This document shows positions 2,950 to 60,215 of a stretch of 64,000 nucleotides of DNA, piece after piece; positions within the stretch are counted from its first letter, which is position 1; every line of letters begins with the position of its first letter. The notes under the pieces are model-generated. The model was not told the DNA's origin, did not search any database, and worked only from the letters and a program-made list of their open reading frames with translations. The DNA is from Lytechinus pictus (lineage: Eukaryota): positions 6,572,001-6,636,000 of the forward strand of contig NW_026974141.1 of the NCBI RefSeq assembly GCF_037042905.1. Direction: 5' to 3'. A program made the position numbers and the translations under genes.

Positions 2950-3160
2950 CTAACCTGGTTTGTGGCATCTGACGAATGCTTGGTATTTCAGTGACTCTGT
3001 AGAATACGTGCAATTTCGGTTATAAAGCGTATAATACCATAAGTGCAGCTATACACATGCGTCATACTCCCCGAGCTGCTATATTCAAGCACATACATCA
3101 TATATCTCTATCAACTGGAGTATTGCGAAACCAGCGATATATTATTTGTCGGAGAAATGT
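2950..3160 (-). pseudogene. Cassette 1: degenerate Cys-rich (SRCR-like?) exon with phase-1 donor
   Basis: EYSSSGSMTHVYSCTYGIIRF/frameshift/YNRNCTYSTESLKYQAFVRCHKPG. Donor G|GTTAG; last exon base 2955. Confidence 0.7.
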
Positions 3161-4650: not shown

Positions 4651-7600
4651 TAGTGGAGCGGTTATGTGACAAAAAAATGGCCAAGATGCTCGGATCTGGC
4701 AGAAAGTGTGAAATTTGGCATACAGGGGTATTTTTGGGCGCTGATTTAAAAAATCGCCGGCCCCAAGCAATTTGACCATCGGGTCGGCCGCCATTTTGAA
4801 ATCCAAGATGGCCGCCATGAAAAATCATAAAAATTTCATTTTCTTGAGTTTTACATGGCATGTGACACTGAAATTTGGCATATAGGGATATTTTGAGGCA
4901 CTGATTTCAAATATTGCCGGCTCCCAGCAATTTGACCTCCAGGTCAGCGGCAAAATGGCCGCCATCTTGAAATCAAAGATGGCCGCCATGATATATTATT
5001 GCAATCATTTTCTCAAGTTTTATATGAACTGCGGTATTGAAATTTGGCATATAGGCTTAATTTGGGGTGCTAATTTCAAATATTGCCGGCCCCAAGTAAT
5101 TTGACCATCGGGTCGGCCGCCATTTTGAAATCCAAGATGGCCGCCATGAGAAATCATTTATGTCATTTTCTTGAGTTTTACATGACGTGTGACACTGAAA
5201 TTTGGTATATAGGGGTACTTTTAGGCACTGATTTCAAATATTGCCAGCCCCCAGCAATTTGACCATTTGGTCGGCTGCAAAATGGCCGCCATCTTGAAAT
5301 CCAAGATGGCCACCATGAAAAATCATTAATGTCATTTTCTTGAGTTTTAAATGATATGTGACACTGAAATTTGGCATATAGGGGTATTTTGAGGAACTGA
5401 TTTCAAATATTGCTGGCCCCCAGCAATTTGACCATTTGATCGGCGGCAAAATGGCCGCCATCTTGAAATCCAAGATGGCCGCCATGATATATTATTGCAA
5501 ACATTTTCTCGAGTTTTAAATGAACTGCGGTATTGAAATTTGGCATATAAGCTTAATTTGGGGTGCTGATTTCAAACATTGCCGGCCCCAAGCGATTTGA
5601 CCATCGGGTCAGCCGCCATCTTGAAATCCAAGATGGCCACCACGAAAAATCATTAATGTCATTTTCTTGAGTTTTAAATGATATGTGACACTGAAATTTG
5701 GAATATAGGGGTATTTTGAGGCACTGATTTCAAATATTGCCGGCCCCCAGCAATTTGTCATCCAGGTCAGCGGCAAAACGGCCGCCATCTTAAAATCCAA
5801 GATAGCCGCCATGAAATATCGTTGCAATAATTTTCTCTAGTTTCGTATGAGCTATGGTATTGAAATTTAGCATATACAGTGTAGGTGTAGTTTAGTCTTA
5901 CCCCCAGGTCAGCTGACATCTTGAAATCTAAGATGGCCGCCATGAAAATCACAAAAAAAATAAAAATCTTGAACTTTACATGTGCTCTTAACTTTGGCAA
6001 GTAGAGTACCTATTTTGGGGTGCTGATTTCAAATATTGCCAGCCCCAAGTGATCTGACCATCAGTTCAGCGGCAGGATGGCTGCCATGAAAAACCATATC
6101 AAATAATTTTCTTGTATTTTACATTACATATGACACCAAAATTTGGCATACAGAAGTACGTGGCACTGATTTTTGCCGGTCACCAGCAATGCAACCACCG
6201 GGTTTCGGCAAAATAACCGCCATGAATTAAAAGCAATGATAATTGTCTTGAGTTTTATATGAACTCTGGCCCTGAAAGTTGTCATATAGTCATATATGTA
6301 GGCCCTGATTATTGTCAGACCCCTGTTTGGTTGCCATTTTGAAATACAAGATGGCCGCCATGAAAGATAATTTGCTCAAGTCTTACGTATGGGCTGTAAC
6401 ACTTTGTATTTGGAGAAAAACTTGATCTTTGCATCCTTGATCACTGAAAAAAAAAACAATAAATAGATGCTATTTTGAATTCCAATATGGCTACCAAGTT
6501 TGAATGATGCACAACGTTACAATGGGGAGTAAAAAAAAATAATAACTCAAGAAAATGATTTTAATGAATTTTCATGACAGTCGATCCTCTCTAGATTTCA
6601 AGATGGTGGCCATTTTGCAGCATATCTATTTGACAGATTACTGGGGGGAAATTTCAATACCCCAAGATGCCAAATTTCAAAATAATAACTACGTTATAAT
6701 TATGACAATTGATATTTTTTAATGATTTTTTATGGCAGCCATCTTGTATTTCAAAATGGCTGCCATTTTGCAGCAAAGGTATCACGGGCCTGAAACATTT
6801 TCCATAGACTCGTGTGTTAAAGAGGCGTTCAAAAAAAAATAAGGATGAAATTCGAGAATTGAATGTTTACTACTAGTAGATAGGATATATGTCTGACATT
6901 CCATATCTGACCAGAAAAGGGTACATCGACGAGCTCATTTTAAAAATAAATCGGCATTTATGAAGATTACACCTGACTGGATCAAATTCATCACTTGACG
7001 CAGTAAAATGGCAATACTTCTTCCGCCAGTATAAGACTAGTTCCAAAGTGGTGATATATCTTCCACAAAAAAAAAAAGGAAGTTCAGTAAAGTTACCCTT
7101 TCAGTGTTAGATTATCAATCATATTCATTCATTTTTGTCAATCAGCAATATCAAAATTAAAAATTGAGAATTATTGGGTTGGCTCGAATTAATATATTTG
7201 GCCTGCCAGTTGTAATTACGCCCGTATAACCCTGACTCAGGGGATCAGATCGCTGAGGGGCCGCAATATTTGAAATAAGCTCCCCACACTACTTCTATAT
7301 TTCAAATGGCAATACCGCAGATCACATAAAACTCAACAAAATAATTGCAATATTTATATGGCAGCCAGCTTGGAATTCAAGATGACGGCCATTTTTCCGC
7401 CGACCAATTGTCAGATTGCTTGGAGCCAGCAAGTTTTTAAATGAACTCACCCAGGTACCGATATGCTACACATTTCAGTGGCACATATTATGTAAAATTT
7501 AAGAAAATGAGTTCAATGATTTTCATGGCGGCCATCTTGGATTTCAAATGGCGGCTGACCCGATGGTCAAATCGCTTGAGGCCAGCAATATTTGAAATCA

Positions 7601-8981
7601 GCACCCCAAAGTAAGCCTATATGCCAAATTTCAATACTGCAGTTCATATAAAACTCGAGAAAATGATTGCAATAATATATAACGGCGGCCATCTTGGATT
7701 TCAAGATGGCGGCCATTTTGCAGCCGACTAAATGGTCAAATTGCTGGGGGCTGGCAATATTTGAAATCAGTGCCTAAAAATACCCCAACAAAAGGCATAC
7801 CAAATTTCAGTGTCACATGTCATGTAAAACTCAAGAAAATGACATTAATGATTTCTCATGGCGGCCATATTGGATTTCAAAATGGCGGCCGACCCGATGG
7901 TCAAATTACTTGGGGCCGGCAATATTTGAAATCAGCACCCTTATTTAAGCCTATGTGCCAAATTTCAATACCGCAGTTCATATAAAACTCGAGAAAATGA
8001 TTGCAATAATATATCATGGCGGCCATCTTGGATTTCAAGATGGCGGCCATTTTGCCGCTGACCAAATGGTCAAATTGCTGGGGGCCAGCAATATTTGAAA
8101 TCAGTGCCTAAAAATATCCCAATAGGCCAAATTTCAGTGTCACATGCCATGTAAAACTCAAAAAATGACATTTAATGATTGGTCACGGCGGCCATCTTGG
8201 ATTTCAAAATGGCGGCCGACCCGATGGTCAAATCGCTTGGGGCCGGCAATTTTTGAAATCAGCACCCCAAATTAAGCCTATTTGCAAAATTTCAATACCG
8301 CAGTTCATATAAAACTCGAGAAAATGATTGCAATAATATATCATGGCGGCCATCTTGGATTTCAAGATGGCGGCAATTTTTCCGCTTACCAAATGGTCAA
8401 ATTGCTGGGGGCCGGCAATATTTGAAATCAGTGCCTAAAAATACCCCTATATACCAAAGTTCATTGTCGCATGTCATGTAAAACTCAAGATTTTTCATGG
8501 CGGCCATCTTGGATTTCAAAATGGCGGCCGACCCGATTGTCAAATCGCTCGGGGCCGGCAATTTTTGAAATCAGCACCCCAAATTAAGCCTATTTGCAAA
8601 ATTTCAATACCGCAGTTCATATAAAACTTGAGAAAATGATTGCAATAATATATCATGGCGGCCATCTTGGATTTCAAGATGGCGGCCATTTTGCCGCTGA
8701 CCAAATGGTCAAATTGCTGGGGGCCGGCAATATTTGAAATCAGTGCCTAAAAATACCCCTATATGCCAAATTTCAGTGTCACATGCCATGTAAAACTCAA
8801 GAAAATGACATTTAATAATTGGTCACGGCGGCCATCTTGGATTTCGAAATGGCGGCCGACTCGATGGTCAAATCGCTTGGGGCCGGCAATTTTTGAAATC
8901 AGCGCCCAAAAATACCCCTGTATGCCAAATTTCACACTTTCTGCCAGATTCGAGCATCTTTTTCACATATCTACTGGACTA
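4651..8981. mobile_element. 4.3-kb foldback non-autonomous DNA transposon, Academ-like
   Basis: TAGT...ACTA termini and 3-bp TTC flanks. Long inverted arms (about 4651-6400 and 7230-8981) are built from alternating ~120-130-bp subrepeats containing AAGATGGCCGCCAT. TAG termini, a 3-bp TSD and long TIRs fit Academ. No transposase is visible. Confidence 0.7.
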
Positions 8982-10842: not shown

Positions 10843-11050
10843 CTAACCTGGTTTGTGGCATCCAACGAATGCTTGGTATTTCCATGAGTTTGTAGAAAAT
10901 AAACAGTTTCAGCTGTTTGTAACATGGTAATTGTAATTGTACACCCACGTCATACTGGTCGAGCTGCTATATTTAATCCAATCCTTAAGACGTAACGCCC
11001 ACGACTCAAGTGACAACATGTTTGCATATACTGTTGGTTGGACAAATTTC
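10843..11050 (-). pseudogene. Cassette 2: degenerate Cys-rich exon
   Basis: LSNQQYMQTCCH.../KDWIKYSSSTSMTWVYNYNYHVTNS*NCLFSTNSWKYQAFVGCHKPG|GTTAG. The stop is a CGA>TGA change; last exon base 10848. Confidence 0.7.
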
Positions 11051-16626: not shown

Positions 16627-16850
16627 CTAACCTGGTTTGTGGCATCCGACGAATGCTTAGTATTTCACTGATGACTCTGTAACAAACGAGCAGTTTCGTT
16701 GATGCATAACACCGAAAATGATATCTAACACAGCCGTCATACTGATCGAGCTATGATGTTCAAAATAATCCTTACAATGATTACCCCTCTATACAAATTG
16801 ACATTTCATTGCAATATACTGATAGCTAGAGAAATCAGAATAATAATAAA
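16627..16850 (-). pseudogene. Cassette 3: degenerate Cys-rich exon, no frameshift
   Basis: YYYSDFSSYQYIAMKCQFV*RGNHCKDYFEHHSSISMTAVLDIIFGVMHQRNCSFVTESSVKY*AFVGCHKPG|GTTAG. Two stops and one in-frame 3-nt insertion; last exon base 16632. Confidence 0.72.
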
Positions 16851-25897: not shown

Positions 25898-26140
25898 CTC
25901 ACCTTGTTTGTTGCATCCAACGAATGCTTGGTATTTCCATAAACCTGTATTAATCGAGTAGTCTCGATGATATTGGATGTACAATGTATTTGCAACCGTA
26001 CACCACAGTCATACTAATGAGCTGCCAAGTTCAATCGAATCCTAACACTAGAAATCCCCGAGACCAAACTGATAACATAAGTATTATACTGACGGTTAGC
26101 GAAATGATAATCATAACCATAAAGATTCAGTTGATCCCAA
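25898..26140 (-). pseudogene. Cassette 4: degenerate Cys-rich exon, closest to cassette 10
   Basis: YHRDYSINTGLWKYQAFVGCNKQG|GTGAG. The donor variant GTGAG keeps the splice consensus; there are indels upstream; last exon base 25903. Confidence 0.68.
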
Positions 26141-27045: not shown

Positions 27046-27744
27046 CAACTAGCGCCCCCCCCCCCCCCTGCTCTCTCAGCGTGAATGTACTGTAATTTTT
27101 GTTGTAGAGGTGGGTTCGGTTAGAAAAACTAAATCTTTGAAATATCCCACACGTCCTCTGGTGCAATGCTTTATCTAGCCTCCCTACACAAGTGAGGGGG
27201 GGGGGGTGCTGATTAACAACGGCGACAAAGGTAGCGTTGAAAACAAGGCTGCATCGTTGCGTCAACTGTTTTGATTGATCGCTGTATTCTTCAATTACTC
27301 AATTGGGTTTGGAACAACAGGCATTACCTTTCCCAACATATCAAATGGCCGACTTGTCAGCTACACCACCTGAGAAAAATGATAGAAATTAATATACCTC
27401 GAATGCTGTGATTGCATACTCAATTCAAGAATCATCTTGTTTGTTTCACGAAAGGCAGCAGGCACATCACGCCGCAATATTAAGAGTTGTTCTCTTTTTA
27501 AATATAACCTCAAATCAGGAATACGTCGGATCAGTAATAAACAAGCAAAAAACACCATGAATAATTATTACGATTCCAAAGACAATGAAATAATTGGTGT
27601 AAGATACACCAAGGTCTGATTTACCAGTCAGAGTATTTTTTTTTCTTTATAATTGAATTTTACTGAAAGCGTCATAAATCATAAGTAATTCTACAAATTC
27701 AAATTTGTGGGAAAGGAAAATGCTAGAAAACCAGCGTAACCCAG

Positions 27745-27900
27745 CATACTGATCGAGCTTTCATATTCAAACACATCATAACAGTGTTAACATCGCTTAT
27801 ACCAAATTGGAAACAGAAATTTGGACGAATATACTGCCTGTCATAAATAGTGTATTGATGACGAAGATGCAATCAATCGAAATGTTATTCACACTACTTG
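27745..27900 (-). pseudogene. Partial cassette lacking the conserved 3' block
   Basis: CATACTGATCGAGCT...CCAAATTGGAAACAGAAATT...AATATACTGC is present, but the donor block is absent. A similar truncation occurs at 36495-36610. Confidence 0.6.
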
Positions 27901-29968: not shown

Positions 29969-30200
29969 CTAACCTGGTTTGTGACATCCGATGAATGCTT
30001 GGTATTTCACTGAGTAAGTATAAAACGTGCAGTTTCGAAAGTGAGTAACTATTTATTTGTACTCGTACACACCTGTCATACTGATCGAGCTGACATATTC
30101 AAAGACATGTTAACATCGGTGATACCAAATTGGAAACAGAAATTTGGACGAATATACTGCCTGTCATACATAGTGTATTGATGACGAAGATTCAATCAAT
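29969..30200 (-). pseudogene. Cassette 5
   Basis: EYVSSISMTGVYEYK*IVTHFRNCTFYTYSVKYQAFIGCHKPG|GTTAG; last exon base 29974. Confidence 0.72.
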
Positions 30201-32296: not shown

Positions 32297-32550
32297 CTAA
32301 CCTGGTATGTGACATCCGATGAATGCTTGGTATTTCACTGAGTATGTAGAAAACGTGCAATATCAGTAGTAACTATTCATTTGTAATCGTACACACCTGT
32401 CATACTGATCGAGCTGACATATTCAAAGACATGTTAGCATCACTGCAACCTAATTTGGTGACAGAAATTTGCACGAATATACTGCTTGTTGGAAAAATAA
32501 TAATAATAAGGAAGATACAGTTTAATTCAAATGTTACTCAAACTACTTGA
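32297..32550 (-). pseudogene. Cassette 6
   Basis: SSISMTGVYDYK*IV/-4 nt/...CTFSTYSVKYQAFIGCHIPG|GTTAG; last exon base 32302. Confidence 0.7.
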
Positions 32551-32838: not shown

Positions 32839-33102
32839 ACCGGTGTGTTGGCTCAGTTGGTAGAGCGTCCGTCTCACAACCGGGAGGTCGGGGGTTCAAA
32901 CCCCGGCCGCGTCAGACCAAAAGACGTTAAAAGATGGGAGTTGCTGCAACCCTGGTTGGCGTTCAACGATTAAAGGGATAGAGCCTCGTCGATCTGGCGC
33001 TGCACAGCGGCTGTCGGGCCCGTGATCAATTGAGCAAAGCAAATTTTCGGAGTATTTCATTTCTTGTCTATTTCGAACAATAAATTATGGATTTTTTTTT
33101 TC
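32839..33102 (+). mobile_element. Full-length tRNA-derived SINE
   Basis: TGGCTCAGTTGGTAGAGCG (A box) and GGTTCAAACCCC (B box), followed by a non-tRNA body shared with 3345-4001. Confidence 0.85.
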
Positions 33103-33516: not shown

Positions 33517-33684
33517 NNNNNNNNNNNNNNNNNNNNNNNNNNNNNNNNNNNNNNNNNNNNNNNNNNNNNNNNNNNNNNNNNNNNNNNNNNNNNNNNNNNN
33601 NNNNNNNNNNNNNNNNNNNNNNNNNNNNNNNNNNNNNNNNNNNNNNNNNNNNNNNNNNNNNNNNNNNNNNNNNNNNNNNNNNNN
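33517..33684. other. Assembly gap (168 N)
   Basis: Run of N. Confidence 1.
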
Positions 33685-33896: not shown

Positions 33897-36800
33897 ATAA
33901 TGCATTTTCTCTTTGCCAATTTTATCTCATCTATGTCCAACACGCGAAATGTAATATCGTTTTATACACACACACACACATACACACACATACATATATA
34001 CATATAAACAAGGGATCATGGGTTTCTATAAATTCTATGGAGAATATAGAAAGTGACATCAAGTATTATCATCGCGACAAAGAATTACTTTTGCCAAGAC
34101 AAGTGGGCTTGCAGCGCGATTGGAGTGGCAAAGGCAAAGGTAAAGTAATGGTACTATCAACCGGTAAATTTTAACAGCGATTTTATGTAAAAGTTAAATA
34201 TACATGTACGCAGACTTAATAGGTAACTTTTTTTTATTATCAAACATATTTGTTCATGCTTTAATATCAGTGATCTTTCAATCCCCGAAAGTCTTCATAG
34301 TGTATCTGCGTCGTCTCTATAATTTTTTCTGCGGTAGAGACGTCGCAGAGATCACACCACGGACTGCCGATACATCCCCAACAGTCTCCGAGACTGTGGT
34401 ATGTTGGAAGTCGGATAAAGATGGCGCTATAAAGCTGAGCATCATTTTCAAGTCCTTGCTTCACAGACCAGCCTTGCAGCAACGCACGGATGTGTTGCTA
34501 TGAGGATGGTTCACTTGATACGCGCATAGAGTGGAAGTGCGCGCACAATTTGGTTGTCATGCCAATGAAAACATGAACATGCAATACTCTTTTTGATTAA
34601 TTGTGGAATTTTGATGAAGAAACGGCTTATGGCAATGGTAGGAAGAATTGATAAAATACAAAATTATATGAAATATGAAATAAATGTGTACTGCTTTTCG
34701 AAATTAAAACCATTACTGAATTATTACTTATAAAAATGATAATTTTCGGAAAACCCGATTGAATTATGTCACTGAATTAAACCTATCTGCTAATTTCACC
34801 CCACTTTTGTTATGACCCAATAAATCATTTCAGAGTACTTATTCTAGTGAAGTATACAGTTGTTTGAAGGTGACAAGTTTTTACATCAAATATACATTTA
34901 ATGTTAAAAAAAAAAGAGTTTGATACCTGATCCAGGTAACTTTTGCTGCAACACAATTATATAGAACATGCATTATTACCGTGACCGCGCACTCATGGTC
35001 GTGCGCACCCCGGTCGGTGCGTAGGTATGATTGGCTGGCATCTGCCTGCGTACCGGGACTGATGCTAGGAAAATGAAAATTTGTGTAAAATCGTTATACA
35101 AATGCCCATCTATAAAAGCATTAAACGCTTTGCCCCCAACAGCATTGTTTGAAGATACCCATTTTGGGGCAGCAAATCCCGCAAAGTGATACCATTGGCA
35201 ATACAACGTAATACATTATATTTACATTATCCCACGTGAAACTTTTCAGCAGGGAGACCTGACCAGATTTAGGCAGTTTAAAAACGTGGCATTTTGAAGT
35301 CAAGCAATTTAGAACTTTTGACCCCCTTGTTTGGTCTACTGCCCCCATTTTCAAGTCACTTAAAAGAATAATATGCTTGATTCACATAAATTACCTGAAA
35401 AAGTAATTACAAAGCTGAGCATTTATGACAATACTTCACTGGCGTAGTTTGCCAAAGATATTGAGATGGAGGGGGCAAATATGATGCACGTAGTAAAGAT
35501 GCGGATGAAGCGAACGAACAAAATTTTCGACCTATCCAGTGAAAAAAAATATATATATATATTTCTTGATAGACTTTAACATAATACTCAGGAAACTACA
35601 TAATACCCCCTCCTACTTGGTTTCAATGCATTTGGCTACTGCCTCCATTTTCAAGTCACTTATATGAATAATATGCCTCATTCACATGTTTGTTGTATTT
35701 TCCATTCCATGGCCATGTAAATGGGTGACTTATTACATTATTTTAAAATAGAAATTTGGTTCTGCTTGGTGTAACAAAAAGAATGAAACAAAATCCCTAT
35801 CTCTTCGGTGCAGCTTTAATATTGAATTAAATCCACTTTAGTGTTATGTGTGTACACTGTATAAAACTTATACTTATCCGTAGCGCAATAAGAAAAAAAA
35901 ACTTACACAAACAAACAAGCAAAAATTGAAGAAGAGACATGAGGCGTGGAGCAAAATGTCATATTTCACCCATTCCCCCTTCCTTTTCTTTTTATTTTTC
36001 TAGGTCGTGAAACTCCCAAATCTACACGCGAATTGTGATGTTACATAAAATAGTTAAGCAACTAAACAACTTGGTCAGAATAACTGACAGGTCTTCCACA
36101 ATTGTGAAAAAAAAGAAAAAAAATGATGAAAATAAATATACTTCGAATGCTACGATTGCATACTCAATTCAAGAATCCTCTCGTTTGGTTCACCCAAGGC
36201 AACAGGCACAACGCACCGCAATATTGAGAGCTGCTCTCTTTTGTTAATATGACTTCAAATCAGGAATCGGGATACGTGAAAAATAATGATAATATATTAC
36301 CATAAACAATATCTACGATTCCAAAGACAATGAAAATATTGGTGTAAGATAGCACCAAAGACTGATTTAGCAGTCACAAATTTTTTTTTTTCTTCTTTTT
36401 AATTGAATGTTACTGAGAACGTCATAAGTCATAAGTAATTCCGCAAATTCAAATTTGTGGGAAAGGAAAATTCTAGAAAACCAGCGTAAACCGGCATAGT
36501 AATCGAGCTGAAATATTCAAACACGTCCTAACAGTGTTAACATCGCTGATACCATATTGGAAACAGAAATTTGGACGAATATACTGCCTGTCGTACATAG
36601 TGTATTGATGACAAATAATTATTTTTATAGCCCTCACTCATTTGCCAACTCGTTTCTGGCTGAATGCAAAACGAGGACCAGCATATTATGGTGCCGTTGG
36701 CTTTCATGTCATTAGTTTAAAAGTCATTTGATGTCATAAATCAACGTTGGTTTCAAAATTGTTAATTTTCCGTTTTTTCTTAATTTTACCCACTAACACT

Positions 36801-37227: not shown

Positions 37228-37520
37228 CTAACCTGGTTTGTGGCATCCGACGAATGCTTGGTATTTCGTTGAGTATGTATCAAACGTGCAGATTGTTAGT
37301 GCGTAATCATATATTTACAACGGTACACATCCGTCATACTGATCGAGCTGACATAATCAAACACATCCTAACACTGTTAACATCGCTGAGAACAAATAGA
37401 TGACACAAATTTGAACGAATATACTGCTTGTTGGAGAAATAAAAAAAATAATCATAACCAAGCCACAGTTTAATCCAAATGTAACTTACAATACTTTCTG
37501 TATGACAAACATTTGCCTCC
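37228..37520 (-). pseudogene. Cassette 7, closest to cassette 11
   Basis: WIKLWLGYDYFFYFSNKQYIRSNLCHLFVLSDVN/fs/C*DVFDYVSSISMTDVYRCKYMITH*/fs/CTFDTYSTKYQAFVGCHKPG|GTTAG; last exon base 37233. Confidence 0.72.
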
Positions 37521-37974: not shown

Positions 37975-38916
37975 CCGTCGGTGGTCATCCGAACCGTCGT
38001 ATCACACTTACGACGGAGCAAATCCATTTTAGAGAAAATTGACTTCAAAGTTTACTGAAATGTTCGCACTTAGTTCTCCAGCCTTACAACATATCAATTG
38101 CTAGAAAAATGCTTGGTTGGAAAGGCCAAGACAATTGTATCCCTATTTTTACACAAAACCAAGGATCAGAGAAAATATCGCAAAAGAGCTACATGCTTGT
38201 AATTTCGGTTTGAGCTGTTTAGAGTTCCCCCGTACAAAAACGCCATAGGCCCGTACTCTGAAGACAGGTTTAACTTAGACCATGGTCTAACTCTGTGCTA
38301 AAATTATGGGAAGCCAAAAGTGTCAACATTTTTATTAAGTTCTATGTTTCTAATGTTTATTGTGCACTTTCCTGATTCATTGATGGTGAAGACAATCATC
38401 TCTTTATACTTCTTAGACAATTATGAATGGTTTGAGAGCCAAATAAGCTGAAATATGGTATATCTACTGTTAGTGATTTATGTAACAATTGGCTATCCAT
38501 ACTTAAACCACAACTTTAAACCTGAGTTTTAGTAAACCCAACTTCAGAATACGGGCTATAGGGAAAACAACAACCCTGACCGCGACTTTAATGCGCGCGG
38601 TCAGTCAAAACGTCGTATCGCTTTTCACTTGCAAAGTCAATGCAGTGCAGATGGGCGATACGAAAGTTTGGCTGATCGCGCGCATTGAAATTGCGGTCAG
38701 TCAAAACGCCGTATCGCTCTGCTACTGTACACGTTTCCAATGGGATTTGCACATTTTATAAAAAAAAATTGTACGGCATTTCAGAAACTAAAATAAATTG
38801 CTGCCTATAAATTTAGTTATGAATAGAATATGACTTGTACTTTAATTTTCTTCAAAAATCTCAAAATCTTTTTTTGACCAAAATTGACTGATACGACAGT
38901 TCGGATGAACGCCGAA
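37975..38916. mobile_element. MITE (family of 19104-19701, opposite orientation) with a nested MITE at 38248-38557
   Basis: Outer TIR GGTCATCCGAACCGTCGTATCA; inner TIR GCCCGTA(C/T)TCTGAAG with ATA flanks on both sides. Confidence 0.8.
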
Positions 38917-40052
38917 AAGGGAACGTGTTTCGCAGGATCTGCTTTGACAAGGTTTCCTCCACATGACATCTTCAGTAACATGATCATTACCTATATTTGA
39001 CTGCTTTCACGAATGTATTGTAGCGTTATATCTTAAAGAAATTTGAATTTCCTTTTTTTTTTCATAATGGTGTTGAGATGTAAAAAATGTATTTACTTTG
39101 CTGTTATTGGCTGTTATTGTGGAAATAAATGAAATATATTGTATCAGCGACATGGTCGATCTGGGACGATTTTCCACAACCATGATGAGCCAAATAGTCG
39201 CGATGAGCCTCATAGTCGCCTGCCGAAGACCTCGAAAGCGTATATGTACTGTAAAAGCAGCCAAGAAGAGCGCCTGTAGATATATTCTTGGATTCTTTAA
39301 CTCTGTGAATGGAAACTATGCCCCCCGAAAATGAATTCGCGATTTTCCATTTAAAACAACGGTTTATTTTTTTCGTGGGGGGGGGGGGGGTCAAAATATA
39401 GGTGTATAATAATTTCCAGTTTTGAAAATGAATAAAATTTCGTTATCCACTACATCTTGCCAAACGAATATATATAACTGACAGCGATCCACCAATAATC
39501 CACGTTAGATACAAATGATTGGGTATTTTCCTTTTCTCTTCGGATGACTCTCTAAAACCTGCATTAAGGGCGCTGGGACATACGTGCATTTAACCCGAAA
39601 CCATTATTCTATCCATTAATCGACGCATGACCTTGGAAAGAGACTTGATCTAAACAAAGGGGGAAACTTGCCGAAAACAGGCTGCCTATTATTTTTTAAC
39701 ATTACCCTTTTAATACGCAAATGCTACACTTTGTCAGTGATTATACGAAGTGGCTCAAACCTCGGCTGGTCTCCAGCCCCGTAGAAAGTAGATGACTACC
39801 GAAAATTAGCAAAGCTAATAAAGAACCTGTTGGCATGGTAAACTTGCATTACTCGTGAATATTATTATTTGTTTCGCACTTAAATAATCATATATATATA
39901 TATTTATATTGATTTAAGCCTTGATTTAAGCTACGCCTACCATTGTTCTCTTCATTCATTTCTTTACAATATTTAAATAAAAAGATTTGCCAAAGTTGTT
40001 GTACATGAATAACTTCACACATTTATATACATTTATATACATATATATATAT

Positions 40053-40252
40053 GGGCAATTCCATAAAATATGTACGTCCGACCCCCTTTATGTAGGACCT
40101 TCATGAAATTTTCTGTCTCTGATTTCTTGTTCTTTTGACAGTCTGTAATGCTCTCAAATGACCATGACTTGGTCAGTTTATGAAGTGAAGTAAAACTTGA
40201 GAAAAGTGGTGGTCGGACGTACAAAAAGGTTGATTATTTTATGGAATTGCCC
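40053..40252. mobile_element. Small MITE inserted in a (TA)n tract
   Basis: TIR GGGCAATTCCATAAAAT plus subterminal TGTACGTCCGACC; ATAT flanks. Confidence 0.8.
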
Positions 40253-40840
40253 ATATATAGACGTGTTTTTCACTACTGTTTCAGAAACGGATTTTGAATT
40301 CTCTTTTTTTGTCACATCATGGGCACTGTCGAATAGTGGGACTTTACTTTTCATTTTTTGACAGCCACGCTTCTATTAAAATGTACGATTTTATTTCTAC
40401 GACATTCACTAAATCATTTGTGATTATTCTTTTCAATATGTCGAAGCAGATTATTTTGATTTTACTCAGGTACATTTTTCACTGCTGATCCTTGACTGTT
40501 GGCGGTGAGGCCATGGCAACGCGTCTTTAGATGCGTCTTGTACAGTAAGCCTCCTCCATCTTCAGCGCGATAATATCTTTGAAAGGTGAGTTTCAGATTC
40601 TGTATGCCTTTGAGCAGACGTGTTTTTCACGACTGTTTCAGAAACGGATTTTGAATTATCTTATTTGTCACATCATGGGCGCTGACGAAGGGTGTGACTT
40701 TAACTTTCATTTTTGAGAGCTACGCCCCTTTCAAAATCTACGATTTTAATTCTATGGCATTTACTAAACGAATACATATATAAATATATATATATATAAC
40801 CAAATAAACCATAGATACTTTTGTGACAATGACTTTAGTC

Positions 40841-41100
40841 CTAACCTGGTTTGTGGCATCTGACAAATGTTTGGTATTTTACTGAGTATGTATAAAACGT
40901 GCAGTTTCGGTAGTATCTTTTTATTTGTACTCGTACACACCTGTCATACTGATCGAGCTGACATATTTAAAGACATACTAACAATGTTAACATCGCAGAC
41001 ACCAAACTGGTGACAGAAATTTTCACTAATATACTGCTTGTTAGACCAAGAATAATAATAAGGAAGATACAGTTTAATTCAAATGTTACTCAAACTACTT
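40841..41100 (-). pseudogene. Cassette 8
   Basis: PYYYSWSNKQYISENFCHQFGVCDVN.../SSISMTGVYEYK*/-4 nt/YRNCTFYTYSVKYQTFVRCHKPG|GTTAG; last exon base 40846. Confidence 0.7.
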
Positions 41101-42232
41101 GATGTTCGTTTGTAAATTATTCATGTTACTAAGGTAATCCGGGACTATTTTTATCGCAACTGTCATGAGTCGCACTGACGTCTGTCGTAAAGCTTGATAT
41201 CGCTTCTGTACTTGGAAGGAGCAGGAATTCAGTGCACCTGTATATTGATCTTTAGATTCTCACACTCTGGATAGGAAATCTATGTCCCAAAATTATTTTT
41301 TGTTTCCATTAAAACAACGTTTTTTCATCAAAATGTAGCTGTATGATGGATTCTAGATAACTTTGCAACCGTCATGCCGTTTCCAACTCAACTTTCCGTT
41401 TGAAAAAAAGCGCCAAAAATTATCAAACTTGAAATGAAAATGCTGTTAAATATGAACAATTTTACTTTTTACGGTCTGCTTCACGTTTAAGATATGCATT
41501 ATAATTTGGCGCGCTGAAAATTTTGGGCATTAACAAAACCTTTACCCCTCTCATTATTAGATTCATGGATCGGCAGTCCTTACTCTTACCTATATGTTTT
41601 TAATAACTTTAGCCTCAGACAGGGAATATTTAGCAGCAGAGGCATTTTCTTTACCATAAAGAATGACAAAAAAAACGGAGCGCTATTAAAAAATCACTGA
41701 CAGGTTTAGAGCGCTTAAAAAAAGAGCAAAACAAACAAACAACAAGGAGAGGTTTAGAGCGCTTTTGATAAATCACAGACAGGTTTAGAGTTAAAACTTA
41801 CATTTTATGGCATGAGTATTCTTATTTTCGTGGAAGTTTAAGTATATATTGAGATTACTTTATGAAACAAAGTTGCAAGGCAGTCTACTATATTGGAGAT
41901 CATTGACTTCTTCTACCAGCAGTATCTCTCATGCATTTAGATGATACTTTGCAAGGGAGCGTTTAGCGACCGAGCGAGAGAAGTTTCGAATGTCAATAGT
42001 AAAAACTTTGATTTAGAGCATTTGACGACGTGAATGGAATACTGCCCTAATTGATTATATACGCATACGGGGCATACATATATAAATATTTTTTTTTCTT
42101 AGTGGTCGGATATTTTTTATTTATTCTATTTATTTATTTTTTTTTTTTTTTTGGGGGGGGCATGAGTGATTTGTTACTTTTGCCAAGACTACTGGGCTGA
42201 GATTGCGCGATTGGAGTGGCAAAGGTAAAGGA

Positions 42233-42480
42233 ATAATAATAATATAGGGTATTTATATTGCGCACATATCCACCTTGTTAGGCGCTCAAGGCGCTCCTAT
42301 ATTACCCGGCTAAGCTAGGCGTTCAAAGCGCACACAGCTTCTTGAGGAATTACTTCCTACCGGTACCCATTTACCTCACCTGGGTTGAGTGCAGCACATT
42401 GTGGATCAGTTTCTTGCTGAAGAAATTACGCCCTGGCTGAGATTCGAACCCACGACCCTCTGTTTCAAAGTCCGGAGACT
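42233..42480 (-). mobile_element. tRNA-derived SINE (family of 15873-16158)
   Basis: Minus-strand GGGTTCGAATCTC B box, shared body, (ATT)n tail. Confidence 0.8.
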
Positions 42481-45646: not shown

Positions 45647-45900
45647 CTAACCTGGTTTGTAGCATCCGACGAATGCTTGGTATTTCACTGAGCAGTTTCG
45701 GTAGTGAGTAACTTTTTATTTGTTCTCGTACACATCTGTCATACTGATCGAGCTGACATATTCAAAGACATGTTAACATCGCTGAAACCAAATTTGGTGA
45801 CAGAAATATACGACACGAATATACTGCTTGTTAGACCAATCATAACCAAAACGAGAATCAAAAGGAAGATACAGTTTTATTCAAATGTTACTCAAACTAC
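45647..45900 (-). pseudogene. Cassette 9
   Basis: SSISMTDVYENK*KVTHYRNC(15-nt in-frame deletion)SVKYQAFVGCYKPG|GTTAG; last exon base 45652. Confidence 0.7.
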
Positions 45901-48115: not shown

Positions 48116-51100
48116 CTAGTATAGTGTACAGTTGGTTTAAGTTGACAAGTTTGTACACCAAATATGATGATTAAAAACGATCTATATGTTTATATCTTTT
48201 TCAAAAATACAAATTAAAATAATGAAAAAACATTGTACGTATTGATCATGATTTTAACATGTTGAATGTCATTATAATGCTAAGTACACGTGAGTTTGAT
48301 TCCTGCTCCAGGGAAATTTCGCTGCAACACACTTATCGTGACCGCGCCGAGCCTCATTGCACTCGTCGCGCGCGTCCGGGTCGGCGCGTATGTACGGTTG
48401 GCTGGGATATGCATGCAAACCGGGACTGATGCTAGCAAAATCAAAATGTGTGTAAAGTTATAGAATGACATAGTAGCTGTAACATTAAAATGTAATGGCA
48501 GGCTTTCACTTTGTAGCTTACAGCACCTGTCAGAACATACTTGTCTCAATACTAACTCTGCGACCAGATAATTTTGGTTTAACGTTTATAGGACCATTAA
48601 TTTCTCTGGCTCGATCCCAATGTCTGGTGCCTAAATGATTGCATTTTCTGGGCCGCGGATTTGCGGAAATGATATGGTCTTTCTATATGTTTTTATTCCA
48701 ATCTACGTTAAAACCGAAAATTTAAATTCCAGCCTTCAACATAATATGGCATTGTGCTGCCTTATCGCCTCAAACAATGCAAGACCAAGTCCACATCATT
48801 TGGTGTCTATTTCAAGCTATGTCAAGTCGCAACGAGATGATAATCCTCCCTGTGCGGCGAGTACTGCATACGTATTGATGTGCCCGGGAAAGGTTCAGCG
48901 TGACAAGACCAGATGTTTAAGGTCTTGGCTATGTTTTTGGAATGTGTGGATTTGGTACGAGCAGCGATATTAAGTACAAGGTCGGTTAACCTATAATTTT
49001 TTTTAGGTAAACTGCAAGAATGACGAAAGCTTTTTCTCCTACATTTTTTCTAATACATTAACATTTAAACAATATTGTTTTATATATTTTCTTAAAGTTT
49101 TCATTATCACTAAAATTAGAAAATGAAACAAACGAACCCCCCTGTTACACCCACAAATGTAATAATCGCCCACAAATGTAATAACGCCCACAAATGTAAT
49201 AACACTTTACCCACAAATGTAATAACGCCCACAAATGTAATAACACTTTACCCACAAATGTAATAATTTCACCCACAAATGTAATAATGCACTTTACCCA
49301 CAAATGTAATAAATTTTGATCGCCCACAAATGTAATAATGACTTTACCCACAAATGTAATAAATTTGAAGGGATTTTTGGCGAATCCGTTCTAAACTAAA
49401 ATCCTATAGTAATGCGTTCATATAGCACAAAAGTGCAAAGTCTTTTTTCCAGACCCGGTTAATAAAACATTATAGTACAAGTCCAAGGTCTTTTTCCAGA
49501 CCCGGTTGTTTAAAAAATTATAATGTAAGTCCAAAGTGTTTCTTCCAGACCCGGTTGTTTAAAAAATTATAACATACGTCCAAAGTCTTTTTTCCAGACC
49601 CGGTTGTTTGAAAAATTATTACATAAGTCCAAACTAAGATACGATAATGATATTCGAGTGGTATAAAAATGAGAATCAAGCTTAGTCTTTTCTCCAGACC
49701 CAGTTAATTAAAACTGGTGGAAAAGTAACAAAGACCCCAACTCTCTTATTAATGTTGAATAACATAGAAATATAGTGTAGTCTTTCATCCAGACCCAGAT
49801 CTTTCAAATATAAATGAATAATAATAATAAATTAGTAATAATAAAAAAGCAAGCAAAGACCCACGATCCTATTTATGTTGAATAACATGGAAATATAGCG
49901 TAGTCTTTCCTCAAGACCCAGATCTTTCAAATAACAAATGAATAATAATAATAATAAATTAGTAATAATAAAAAGCCAACAAAGACCCACGATCCTATTT
50001 ATGTTGAATAACATGGAAGTATAGCGTAGTCTTTCCTCAAGACCCAGATCTTTCAAATAACAAATGAATAATAATAATAATAATAAATTAGTGATAATAA
50101 AAAAGAGAGAGTTTTCTTTATTCCAGACCTTGTCATTTTCAAAATATAAGATAAATGAAATCCTCATAACTAAGACACAATCCTATTATTGTGCCTGTTC
50201 AGCATGAATAAGATGATTGGGGGAGTATTTCATCAACATTTATGTCCGACAAGTTGTCAGATCTGACAACTGTCCTTGATGTTGATTGGCTAAGAAGCAG
50301 TGCTACCATGGTAAGTGTCGGATAAAACGTCAGACAACTCCTTTCATGAAATGCTCCCCGGGCTCTAAGTTTTGATGTTTTTTTTTTTATCATAAATGTC
50401 TTTGCCTGGAAGAAAAAGTGAATGTTTAATTACATCATTCATTACAGGATGTTAGGCTGGAAGAGGGATAATTTTTTTTTCTTTTTTTAATAAACAGGTC
50501 TGGTCAAATTAAGTATGCGTCATCACAAGGGTTGTATAGTTTGGAAGATGCTGGGGTCAAAGTTTTAAGATTAATGTTTCGCTTAATTTGTATTTTTAAG
50601 AGAACTGTGTGATTGTTAAAGAAAACACTCTAAGTCCAAGCATTTTAAGTGGGTTTAATTTTGAAGATTGGTCTTAGCTGTGATTTTTTTTCAATATTTG
50701 TTTATCTTTTAAATAACCGAGTCTAGACGAAAGACTAAGCATAATACTCGGGTTATTCCACAAGAATCAGAATATGACAAAGTCTTTTGTTTTTAAGATT
50801 GTTAAAATCATTTTTTAATTACTCGGTCTGGAATAAAGACAACGCTCTAAACATGTGCTTTTCTACATGCATGGTCTTAATTTGGAGGATTGTTGGTTCT
50901 CAGATTCGTTGTTGGGGGTTGGGTTTTATTGATTTTTTTATTCTTGAAATAATTGTGTCTGGAGGAAAGTCGATCTTCGACAGTCGGTCTTCATGTTATT
51001 CCACAGTAATTTTATTATTGGATATTCGTTTTAGAATATTTGTAAAAACTATTTTATTTTTTTAAATACTAACCAAGTCTGGAGAAAGGATGTTTGCTTA

Positions 51101-51390: not shown

Positions 51391-52099
51391 GTCGTAGTAT
51401 TATTTTTTTTAAATGGGTGTGGGGTAAAGACATATTTTTTTGCTGGGTGAAACTTTGGAAAATTGGTCTTAGATTTGAAGTTTTTTAATTCATTTTTAGA
51501 ATAGCCGGGTCTGGAGGAAAGAGTACTCTTGATTCTCAATTTACCCTTAGCGCATATATTCACAATATACGCCGTATAAGTTAAAACAACAACAAAGACA
51601 TTAATTCCATTAGTTTTAATTAACTGGGTCTGGAGAAAAGACTAAGCTCGATTCTCATTTTTATTCCACTGGAATATCATTATCGTATCTTAGTATGGAC
51701 TTATATTAAAATTCTTGAAATAAACAGGTCTGGAAAAAGACTTCGGACTTATATTAACATTTTTTAAACAACCGGGTCTGGAAAAAGACTTGGACTTATA
51801 TTGTAATTGTTTAATTATCCAGGTCTGGAAAGATGACTGCACTTTTGTGCTATATGAACGCAGTGCTATAGGGTTTAGTTTTAATTTTAAGTAACCGGGT
51901 CTGGAGAAAAGACTACGCTTGATTCTCAATTTACTCTTAGCGCATATATTCACAATATATGCCATATAAGTTGGAACAACAATAAAGACATTAATTCCAC
52001 CAGTTTTAATTAACTGGGTCTTGAGAAAAGACTAAGCTCGATTCTCATTTTTTTTCCACTGGAATATCATTATTGTATCTTAGTTTGAACTTATATTAA

Positions 52100-53800
52100 G
52101 ATTTTTGAAACAACCGGGTCTGAAAAAAGACTTTGGACTTATATTATTATTTTTGAAACAACCGGGTCTGGAAAAAAAGTCTTTGGACATATATTATATT
52201 TTTGGAAACAACCGGGTCTGGAAAAAAGACTTTGGACTTATATTATTATTTTTGAAACAACCGGGTCTGGAAAAAAAGACTTTGGACATATATTATAATT
52301 TTTGAAACAACCGGGTCTGGAAAAAGACTTTGGACCTATATTATTATTTTTGAAACAACCGGGTCTGGAAAAAAAAGACTTTGGACATATATTATATTTT
52401 TTGAAACAACCGGGTCTGGAAAAAAGACTTTGGACTTATATTATTATTTTTGAAACAACCGGGTCTGGAAAAAAAGACTTTGGACATATATTATAATTTT
52501 TGAAACAACCGGGTCTGGAAAAAGACTTTGGACCTATATTATTATTTTTGAAACAACCGGGTCTGGAAAAAAAAGACTTTGGACATATATTATAATTTTT
52601 GAAACAACGGGGTCTGGAAAAAGACTTTGGACTTATATTATAATTTTTTAAACAACCGGGTCTGAAAAAAAGACTTTGGACTTATATTATTATTTTTGAA
52701 ACAACCGGGTCTGGAAAAAAAGACTTTGGACATATATTATTATTTTTGAAACAACCGGGTCTGGAAAAACACTTTGGACTTATATTATAATTATTGAAAC
52801 AACCGGGTCTGAAAAAAAGACTTTGGACTTATATTATAATTTTTGAAACAACCGGGTCTGGAAAAAAAGACTTTGGACTTATATTATATTTTTTGAAACA
52901 ACCGGGTCTGGAAAAAAGACTTTGAACTTATATTATTATTTTTGAAACAACCGGGTCTGAAAAAAAGACTTTGGACTTATATTATTATTTTTGAAACAAC
53001 CGGGTCTGGAAAAACACTTTGGACTTATATTATAATTATTGAAACAACCGGGTCTGAAAAAAAGACTTTGGACTTATATTATAATTTTTGAAACAACCGG
53101 GTCTGGAAAAAAAGACTTTGGACTTATATTATATTTTTTGAAACAACCGGGTCTGGAAAAAAGACTTTGAACTTATATTATTATTTTTGAAACAACCGGG
53201 TCTGAAAAAAAGACTTTGGACTTATATTATAATTTTTGAAACAACCGGGTCTGGAAAAAAAGACTTTGGACATATATTATAATTTTTGAAACAACCGGGT
53301 CTGGAAAAAGACTTTGGACCTATATTATTATTTTTTAAACAACCGGGTCTGGAGAAAAAAGACTTTGGACATATATTATAATTTTTGAAACAACGGGGTC
53401 TGGAAAAAGACTTTGGACTTATATTATAATTTTTTAAACAACCGGGTCTGAAAAAAAGACTTTGGACTTATATTATTATTTTTGAAACAACCGGGTCTGG
53501 AAAAAAAGACTTTGGACATATATTATATTTTTTGAAACAACCGGGTCTGGAAAAACACTTTGGACTTATATTATAATTATTGAAACAACCGGGTCTGAAA
53601 AAAAGACTTTGGACTTATATTATAATTTTTGTAACAAGTGGGTCTGGAAAAAAGACTTTGGATTTATATTACAATTTTTTAAACAACCGGGTCTGGAAAA
53701 AAGACTTTGGACGTATATTATAATTTTGAAACAACCGGGTCTGGAAAAAGACTTTGGACTTGTACTATAATGTTTTATTAACCGGATCTGGAAAAAAGAC
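52100..53800. repeat. ~49-bp tandem minisatellite, about 35 copies
   Basis: Unit TTTGAAACAACCGGGTCTGGAAAAAAGACTTTGGACTTATATTATAATT. Confidence 0.95.
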
Positions 53801-54344
53801 TTTGCACATTTGTGCTTTATGAAGGCATTACTATAGGATTTTAGTTTAGAACGGATTCGCCAAAAATCCCTTCAAATTTATTACATTTGTGGGTAAAGTC
53901 ATTATTACATTTGTGGGCGATCAAAAATTATTACATTTGTGGGTAAAGTGCATTATTACATTTGTGGGTGAAATTATTACATTTGTGGGTAAAGTGTTAT
54001 TACATTTGTGGGCGTTATTACATTTGTGGGTAAAGTGTTATTACGTTTGTGGGCGTTATTACATTTGTGGGCGTTATTACATTTGTGGGTGCAACACCCC
54101 CCCCCCAAAAAAAAAAAAAAAAAAAAAAAATCCTCTACAATCTAGCCTAAAAGTGCCCTGAGAGAAAATGGTCACAAAACCTTAGCAAAGAGGACCTTTC
54201 TAAAAGTAACATTGCCACGCTGAGCTCTTCTACGTTCATAGTCATGAATCAATGCAATACATGATACATGTAAGAGCACGACCACACTCGGTACACGCAC
54301 ACCAATTATTACATCGGCGTCTCCTACCAAAGCTACCAAGAGTT

Positions 54345-56472: not shown

Positions 56473-56715
56473 CTAACCTGGTTTGTAGCATCCAACGAAT
56501 GCTTGGTATTTCCATGAACCTGTATTAATCGAGTAGTCCCGGCGATATTTAGCTTATTTGCAACTGTACATTACCCTTATACTGATCGAGTTGCTATATT
56601 CAATCCAATCCTAACACTAGAAATTCCCGAGACCAAACTGATAACATGAGTGCTATATAATATACTGACGGTTAGACAAATCTGTATAATAATCATAAAG
56701 ACCCAGTTAATTCAA
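56473..56715 (-). pseudogene. Cassette 10
   Basis: LGLYDYYTDLSNRQYII*HSCYQFGLGNF*C*DWIEYSNSISIRVMYSCK*AKYRRDYSINTGSWKYQAFVGCYKPG|GTTAG. Continuous frame with four stops; last exon base 56478. Confidence 0.72.
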
Positions 56716-59945: not shown

Positions 59946-60215
59946 CTAACCTGGTTTGTGGCATCCGACGAATGCTTGGTATTTCGTTGGGTTTGTTGTA
60001 TCAAACGTGCTGTTTGGTAGTGCGTAATCATATATATAAACAAAGGTACACATCCTTCATACTGATAGAGCTGACATATTTAACACATCTTCACACTGTT
60101 AGCATTGCTCAGACCAATTAAATAACAGAATTTTAAATGAATATACTGCTTGTCAGAGAAATCATAGTGATAATGATAATTGCTAAGCCACAGTTCAATC
60201 CAATTGTTACTTACT
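59946..60215 (-). pseudogene. Cassette 11
   Basis: VSNNWIELWLSNYHYHYDFSDKQYIHLKFCYLIGLSNAN/fs/...SSISMKDVYLC/fs/...TFDTTNPTKYQAFVGCHKPG|GTTAG; last exon base 59951. Confidence 0.7.

Follow-up and report, generated by a model that had tools for sequence, protein, structure and literature searches.

Why should a sequence of 40 nucleotides (nt) remain almost unchanged in copy after copy of a cassette that appears otherwise dead? The question arises in a 64-kb stretch of contig C21 (C21:6,572,001-6,636,000 of an 811-Mb assembly; hereafter the window), where an initial annotation made from the letters alone had pointed to 11 copies of such a block and had proposed either a nucleotide-level function or homogenization by gene conversion.

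A conserved block recurs beside a variable core

All 11 copies were recovered, with the mismatch counts (1, 1, 1, 4, 2, 3, 0, 4, 1, 2 and 0 in order along the window) and the absence of indels exactly as first described, and shuffled sequence gave no match to the 40-mer. The cassettes that carry the block, and two truncated ones, are as follows (window coordinates; the first coordinate of each numbered cassette is also the start of its block as counted on the plus strand).

2950-3078, minus: cassette 1; block 2950-2989 (5 intron nt and the last 35 exon nt), anchor 3061-3078; stop in the ancestral frame
10843-10966, minus: cassette 2; block 10843-10882, anchor 10949-10966
16627-16753, minus: cassette 3; block 16627-16666, with a stop codon within the block (CAA to TAA)
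25898-26043, minus: cassette 4; block 25898-25937, 4 mismatches; intron begins GTGAG
27722-27867, minus: truncated cassette; upstream half only, without the block
29969-30092, minus: cassette 5; block 29969-30008; recent 2.3-kb duplicate of cassette 6
32297-32416, minus: cassette 6; block 32297-32336
36472-36617, minus: truncated cassette; upstream half only, without the block
37228-37350, minus: cassette 7; block 37228-37267, perfect match
40841-40960, minus: cassette 8; block 40841-40880, 4 mismatches; sole window copy without a stop from anchor to donor (40846-40957), its open frame being mixed, not ancestral
45647-45755, minus: cassette 9; block 45647-45686; core deletion leaving a 101-nt cassette
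56473-56593, minus: cassette 10; block 56473-56512
59946-60073, minus: cassette 11; block 59946-59985, perfect match

Among the 11 window copies, mean pairwise identity is 0.92 in the block (range 0.80-1.00), 0.56 in the core, the 65 nt from anchor to block (range 0.35-0.87), and 0.38 in the intron from +6 to +60. The second anchor reported to bound the variable core is real, with a mean identity of 0.88; it has 14 matches at up to three mismatches in the window, 10 of them in block-bearing cassettes and 4 in truncated or anchor-only copies. The neighbouring sequence is as poorly conserved and as disrupted as had been described: a stop or frameshift breaks the ancestral frame in 11 of 11 copies, and anchor-to-donor lengths range from 101 to 121 nt, with all three residue classes represented. 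What recurs from unit to unit of the window is this piece of 150-370 nt and nothing else. As a guard against ascertainment bias, we also searched with a model restricted to the upstream part, and so free of the block, and obtained 88 matches, nearly all with the block just downstream.

One detail of the initial annotation did not survive. The CpG-rich CCGACG, said to be largely retained, has lost at least one CpG in all but 4 of the 11 window copies, and it is at these CpGs that most changes in the block fall; the four CpG positions of the block change recurrently, as expected. Across the whole window the observed/expected ratio of CpG is 0.91, so that CpG retention in the block is unremarkable. 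This ratio suggests little germline methylation, which in urchins usually accompanies weak germline transcription.

The block is an exon end with its 5' splice site

On the minus strand, which is the sense strand, the block consists of the last 35 nt of an exon and the first 5 nt of an intron. Every copy read on that strand ends in ..GGATGCCACAAACCAG and continues with GTTAG or GTGAG, and the exon end ..CCACAAACCAG followed by GT(G/T)AG forms a 5' splice site in phase 1 (CCAG before the border and GT[G/T]AG after it). The conservation noticed at first sight therefore stands, and what had gone unnoticed is the strand and the nature of the element, the 3' end of a minus-strand exon together with its donor.

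Across 59 non-redundant copies, conservation climbs towards the exon end, where the last 15 bases, G+1, T+2 and A+4 are retained in 92-100%; by position, the donor keeps G+1 in 98%, T+2 in 95%, A+4 in 95% and G+5 in 83% of copies. At +3 both G and T occur, a tolerance that a splice site allows, and the remaining donor positions are fixed. From +6 onward the same copies are at background, which leaves a sharp edge at +5. That the conserved span ends exactly where the 5' splice-site consensus ends argues that the donor is maintained as a donor.

Our best explanation, advanced tentatively and read from the sequence, is that what is maintained in each cassette is a splice-donor module that includes a splicing element on the exon side. 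Selection would keep this module in every cassette, not its coding capacity; the module would comprise the 5' splice site and about 30 nt of exon-side sequence, and those 30 nt or so would act as a splicing enhancer or selector. Against this reading stand the non-coding state of most cassettes, the lack of a conserved acceptor site, none of which could be defined for the cassettes, and the position of the window far upstream of the runs of Sushi exons described below. The CpG ratio, too, counts against it, as do the outcomes given below of the protein profile search, of the four runs and of the search for pairing in one intron.

Other signals were considered at this border. A spliced-leader gene is ruled out by an intron side that is unconserved past +5, a recombination-signal-like element downstream by the lack of anything conserved after +5, and an antisense acceptor on the plus strand by its unconserved AG.

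Constraint acts on nucleotides

Conservation in the block is equal at codon positions 1, 2 and 3 (0.88, 0.89 and 0.89, respectively), bearing out the earlier remark that silent sites are retained, and many block changes are non-synonymous, one of them a stop. On a tree built with FastTree from all sequence except the block, with changes counted by Fitch parsimony, the intron took 21.2 steps per site, the core 10.3, the anchor 8.6 and the block 4.6 (block versus core, p = 1e-7), and third positions of the block took 4.8-6.0 steps. The outcome that the initial annotation had named as speaking against it, statistically equal silent-site divergence in block and core once phylogeny is accounted for, was thus not what we found. 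The age of the distant copies is evident from their flanks, which are saturated.

Young duplicates were analysed in 12 clusters, with stratification by cluster and with the expectation taken from 700-nt flanks on each side. The block had collected 11 substitutions against 29 expected (observed/expected 0.38, p = 1e-4); for the other 100 nt of the cassette the figures were 42 against 72.6 (observed/expected 0.58, p = 7e-5). Some of these young copies carry stops already. The constraint is current, acts on nucleotides and spans the whole terminal 135 nt, being strongest in the block, and the conservation of the block at the nucleotide level has no codon periodicity.

That protein constraint alone would be insufficient had been argued from the start, and codon positions, the tree and the young duplicates all support it. 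As a leftover of coding function, the block would encode the domain's most conserved peptide, KYQAFVGCHKP, and would seem special only through ascertainment or because the copies died recently. The conserved islands do match the codons of key residues (SMT, VY, C.YG, CTF and the final Cys), and the longest open frames are in phase 1, but third positions of the block show no relaxation, its changes are often non-synonymous and include the stop, it is present in copies that were found without it, the distant copies with their saturated flanks are old, and the deficit persists in young duplicates that already have stops. We regard leftover protein constraint as quite unlikely, and the codon-position and young-duplicate tests largely refute it; since protein constraint cannot explain the block, the block is kept at the nucleotide level.

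In the young clusters (L001-L008, L023, L026, L028, L029, L042 and L046), substitutions in the last 135 nt are distributed 20:29:11 over codon positions 1:2:3, a pattern in which third positions of the ancestral frame change least, the opposite of coding constraint.

Gene conversion might produce a similar picture. The block would have been the most conserved part while the exons were functional, and conversion of short tracts towards the majority, with other cassettes or functional copies as partners, would erase new mutations, so that dead copies would need no function. We see this as possible, if somewhat doubtful. More than 200 near-identical stretches of 35-40 nt lie in same-strand tandem arrays, silent sites are conserved, the deficit reaches, more weakly, the whole terminal 135 nt, and conversion to the consensus mimics purifying selection in all tests that we ran. 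Block and core variants, however, fall on the same tree without excess incongruence. Scaled homoplasy was 0.51 in the block and 0.54 in the core (p = 0.57; 181 columns, low power), so that block variants fit the tree of the rest of the cassette as core variants do, with no sign of a separate block genealogy, and the block-specific conversion proposed earlier received no backing from this tree-incongruence test. The homology tract is, moreover, very short for efficient conversion, with unalignable flanks, and conversion does not predict a conservation edge exactly at +5. The same block consensus is also shared by two contigs from other public assemblies (L051 and L052), and for the longer of them, L051, we found no syntenic counterpart in this genome.

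Cassettes resemble decayed SRCR-type exons

The ancestral end phase, phase 1, gives the longest open frames across the 59 copies, of which no more than about 17 have an ancestral frame that stays open for at least 40 codons; the longest read ..ICRQLGFG....SSxSMTxVYxCxYGVAxHxxCTFSTxSxKYQAFVGCHKP. When a profile of the open copies was compared with 1.84 billion proteins, the only matches were two read-through open reading frames (ORFs), those of L051 and L052, which run straight through the donor into the intron and come from contigs of unspliced DNA; among these proteins, the profile search found none that is spliced or annotated and has a cassette. Six open cassettes and four pieces of locus L036 had no Pfam match at E ≤ 10, and Pfam found nothing in the ten largest ORFs of the window. 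Comparison with five canonical SRCR exons of this genome by hhalign returned a probability of 0.1, a profile search of the PDB found no SRCR domain, and a sequence search of the PDB and a word search had no matches.

Signs of an SRCR origin come from motifs, anatomy and a language model. Hallmark motifs of the domain (RL..G...G.VEV; V.CRQLG.G; Cys-x9-Cys; terminal A..V.C) can be made out in order in L036, L044 and L039, spread across three frames in L036. In one pairwise comparison, L044 matched a canonical SRCR exon by BLASTP with E = 3e-4, driven by CRQLGFG, and the best matches in a search with ESM features were SRCR clusters, with scores of 0.86-0.89. The cassette family matches the anatomy of canonical SRCR exons at its start, where an intron ending in ag is followed by a phase-1 GTGATG about six codons before RL.GG, and both end in phase 1, 2-4 codons past the last Cys. 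The most complete relic of the ancestral exon, L036:5863-6193 on the plus strand (C21 at about 9.316 Mb, at the inner edge of the plus-strand array described below), retains a good acceptor, after which G.RL..G.....G.VEV can be read; it carries frameshifts, and neither the block nor the donor is present. Sea urchin genomes hold many SRCR exons, and at least 942 candidates are present in this one. With moderate confidence, we consider the cassette to be a strongly diverged or decayed SRCR-type exon.

A transposon or SINE origin is ruled out, as the family occupies one contig with one strand per array and only this piece repeats. A side branch of the family lies at L033:7574-9309 on the minus strand (C21 at about 6.7976-6.7993 Mb), where four decayed exon copies form a tight tandem of 530-600 nt; these end differently, in ..TTCTGCTGGATATATCAG followed by GTAAAA, so that the block is not universal in the family.

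Two inverted arrays interleave with Sushi exons

A 33-mer of the block has at least 221 matches at up to three mismatches, against none for a control, and all of those listed lie on C21 in two inverted, megabase-scale arrays, the minus-strand array holding 135 matches (about 5.41-6.76 Mb) and the plus-strand array 86 (about 9.37-10.43 Mb), according to maps drawn from search tables, through which alone most of both arrays was seen. A decayed SRCR-type exon would thus have been amplified to more than 200 cassettes in these two arrays. The outer ends of the arrays (C21 5.38-5.49 versus 10.30-10.41 Mb; L019-L030) are inverted duplicates with 97-99.7% identity over kilobases. These are either the product of a giant, palindrome-like duplication of very recent date or an artefact of the assembly or of haplotypes.

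Sushi (CCP) exons, scoring above the cut-off of Pfam PF00084, form runs in the arrays, on the same strand as the cassettes. In L025:5549-9811 on the plus strand, nine open Sushi exons with good phase-1 splice sites come after four cassettes spaced about 1 kb from one another. The Sushi acceptors are in phase 1 (an intron ending in cag before an exon opening with GA) and are compatible with the cassette donor (CCA G, then gt). Across the genome, runs of this kind are spaced about 100 kb apart, over 5.61-6.42 Mb of the minus strand and 9.73-10.53 Mb of the plus strand; each comprises about 9-14 intact exons with phase-1 borders and has cassettes ahead of it, one lying 2-3 kb upstream; as 150 of the 320 Sushi candidates were scored, this map is a lower bound. 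Together, the runs and cassettes look like a tandemly amplified SRCR-like/Sushi mosaic gene family.

Each cassette has its own donor, and intact, phase-compatible Sushi exons lie downstream on the same strand, which is the arrangement of the protocadherin (Pcdh) or UGT1A type; as far as sequence can tell, the locus is organized as a set of variable exons, each equipped with a donor, ahead of constant exons. If the splice-donor module is what selection keeps, the donors of the cassettes would be used, joining to a downstream Sushi exon. Among the 150 scored candidates, no Sushi run falls between 6.42 and 6.80 Mb and none in the window, which therefore belongs to a stretch of about 340 kb with cassettes only; the nearest scored run (6.408-6.416 Mb) lies at least 150 kb downstream of the window.

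RNA structure, pairing and transcription

Folding of 32 copies with RNAalifold gave -1.05 kcal/mol and three pairs without covariation, that is, no conserved fold, and the structured RNA element that had been suggested is unsupported by these copies. An Rfam scan of the window returned one tRNA and no other known RNA family. Neither the window nor the sampled flanks contained an opposite-strand match to the block, and in the L025 intron between a cassette and the first Sushi exon, the best duplex with the block had -27.7 kcal/mol, compared with -27.3 ± 2.9 kcal/mol for shuffled blocks. The splice enhancer or selector proposed in the initial annotation is thus the best fit to the anatomy, while the one intron tested contained no complementary docking site for it. 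Contigs from four runs of another organism, guessed to be RNA, cover transposon pieces only and leave the cassettes essentially uncovered.

The lack of RNA structure would also suit an element of about 35 bp recognized as DNA by a protein with sequence specificity, such as a multi-zinc-finger factor, which would organize chromatin, promoter choice or recombination along the arrays, in the manner of the conserved elements of protocadherin variable exons or of a motif of the CENP-B-box type. The length of the element, its conservation at the nucleotide level and its same orientation in every unit of the mirror-image arrays are as such a site would have them. A binding site does not, however, account for a conserved span that stops exactly at the end of the 5' splice-site consensus, nor for a tolerance of G or T at +3 that is splice-site-like while other donor positions are fixed, and we judge it improbable.

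Comparison with known systems

Like the mutually exclusive exon clusters of the Dscam1 type in insects, the cassettes form same-strand tandem arrays of homologous variable exons, in which a short nucleotide-level element is the most conserved part of each unit and constant exons lie downstream. The differences from Dscam are considerable. Every Dscam variant is coding-competent and of matched length, whereas the cassettes are mostly broken and span 101-121 nt in three residue classes; Dscam selectors are intronic and only partly alike, whereas the cassette element is an exon end with its donor, nearly identical in all units. Dscam has a docking site; no sequence complementary to the cassette block was found in the one intron tested. 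The cassette array is 10-100 times larger.

The clustered protocadherin and UGT1A loci of vertebrates share with the cassettes a 5' splice site belonging to each variable exon, the possibility of shared constant exons downstream and a conserved sequence element at each variable exon. In those loci a variable exon is a long, intact first exon served by a promoter of its own, whereas the cassettes are decayed, internal-type SRCR exons. In exon anatomy the cassettes are closer to the multi-exon SRCR genes of sea urchins and to arrays of the DMBT1 type, with one exon per domain and phase-1 borders. With the SRCR profile of Pfam, canonical exons of this genome reach 110-123 bits; they lie 0.6-1.2 kb apart, whereas the cassettes have no Pfam score, are spaced 1-11 kb apart and keep only the 3' end of the exon.

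Selection at synonymous sites within exonic splicing enhancers resembles what we see in the block, in that silent sites near a splice site evolve more slowly. That effect is modest and occurs in functional coding exons, whereas the reduction in the block is at least 60%, extends over 35 nt and is found in non-coding exons.

The pseudo-V genes of chicken, the VSG genes of trypanosomes and the VLR genes of lampreys also include large arrays of broken copies with conserved ends and a variable core beside intact genes. Their cassettes have no splice donors and are used at the DNA level, whereas here there is a donor in each cassette. By analogy, the dead cassettes could be templates that are partly copied into an expressed SRCR-like/Sushi gene, with anchor and block as homology arms. 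The variable core does lie between two conserved arms, most cassettes are pseudogenic yet constrained, and the arrays flank and interleave with intact gene bodies. A conversion donor would not need the splice donor that every cassette has, though, evidence of somatic change is nil, and the genealogy of the arms is not uncoupled from that of the core in the homoplasy comparison above, whose 181 columns give low power. Diversification at the DNA level appears highly improbable to us.

Sea urchins have very large innate immune gene families. We know of no description in these animals of a system like Dscam and the protocadherins or like VLR, nor, to our knowledge, is there a mechanism known in them that combines variable and constant receptor parts. 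The locus shows an anatomy of this kind, with hundreds of variable cassettes, an invariant donor module in each and phase-matched intact Sushi exons downstream. Taken further, it would be a receptor-diversification locus in which more than 200 SRCR-derived cassettes are either joined, one per transcript, to a Sushi constant region or copied into an expressed gene, the block serving as selector or homology arm; this broader proposal we consider unlikely.

If the donors of the splice-donor module are used, the locus would be a new case of diversity by exon choice beyond arthropods and vertebrates. If they are unused, it would be a clean natural example of a 35-nt stretch that resists decay in hundreds of dead copies and would be useful for telling selection from gene conversion.

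Other features of the window

The window contains a run of N at 33517-33684 and a tRNA-Val (CAC) gene, or an element derived from a tRNA, which lies between cassettes 6 and 7 at 32842-32914 on the plus strand (Rfam 36.7 bits; ARAGORN). Dispersed repeats at 38200-38600, 40000-40400 and 42200-42399 are very abundant, at 85-90% identity, in the runs from another organism, and are transposon families common to urchins. Two 169/327-nt satellite arrays, at 4709-5876 and 7245-8934, lie in mutually opposite orientation about 1.4 kb apart. A 49/99-nt satellite occupies 51700-53804 with about 35 copies and recurs inverted at 49427-49633; it is flanked by inverted 41-nt repeats at 49169-49366 and 53874-54071.
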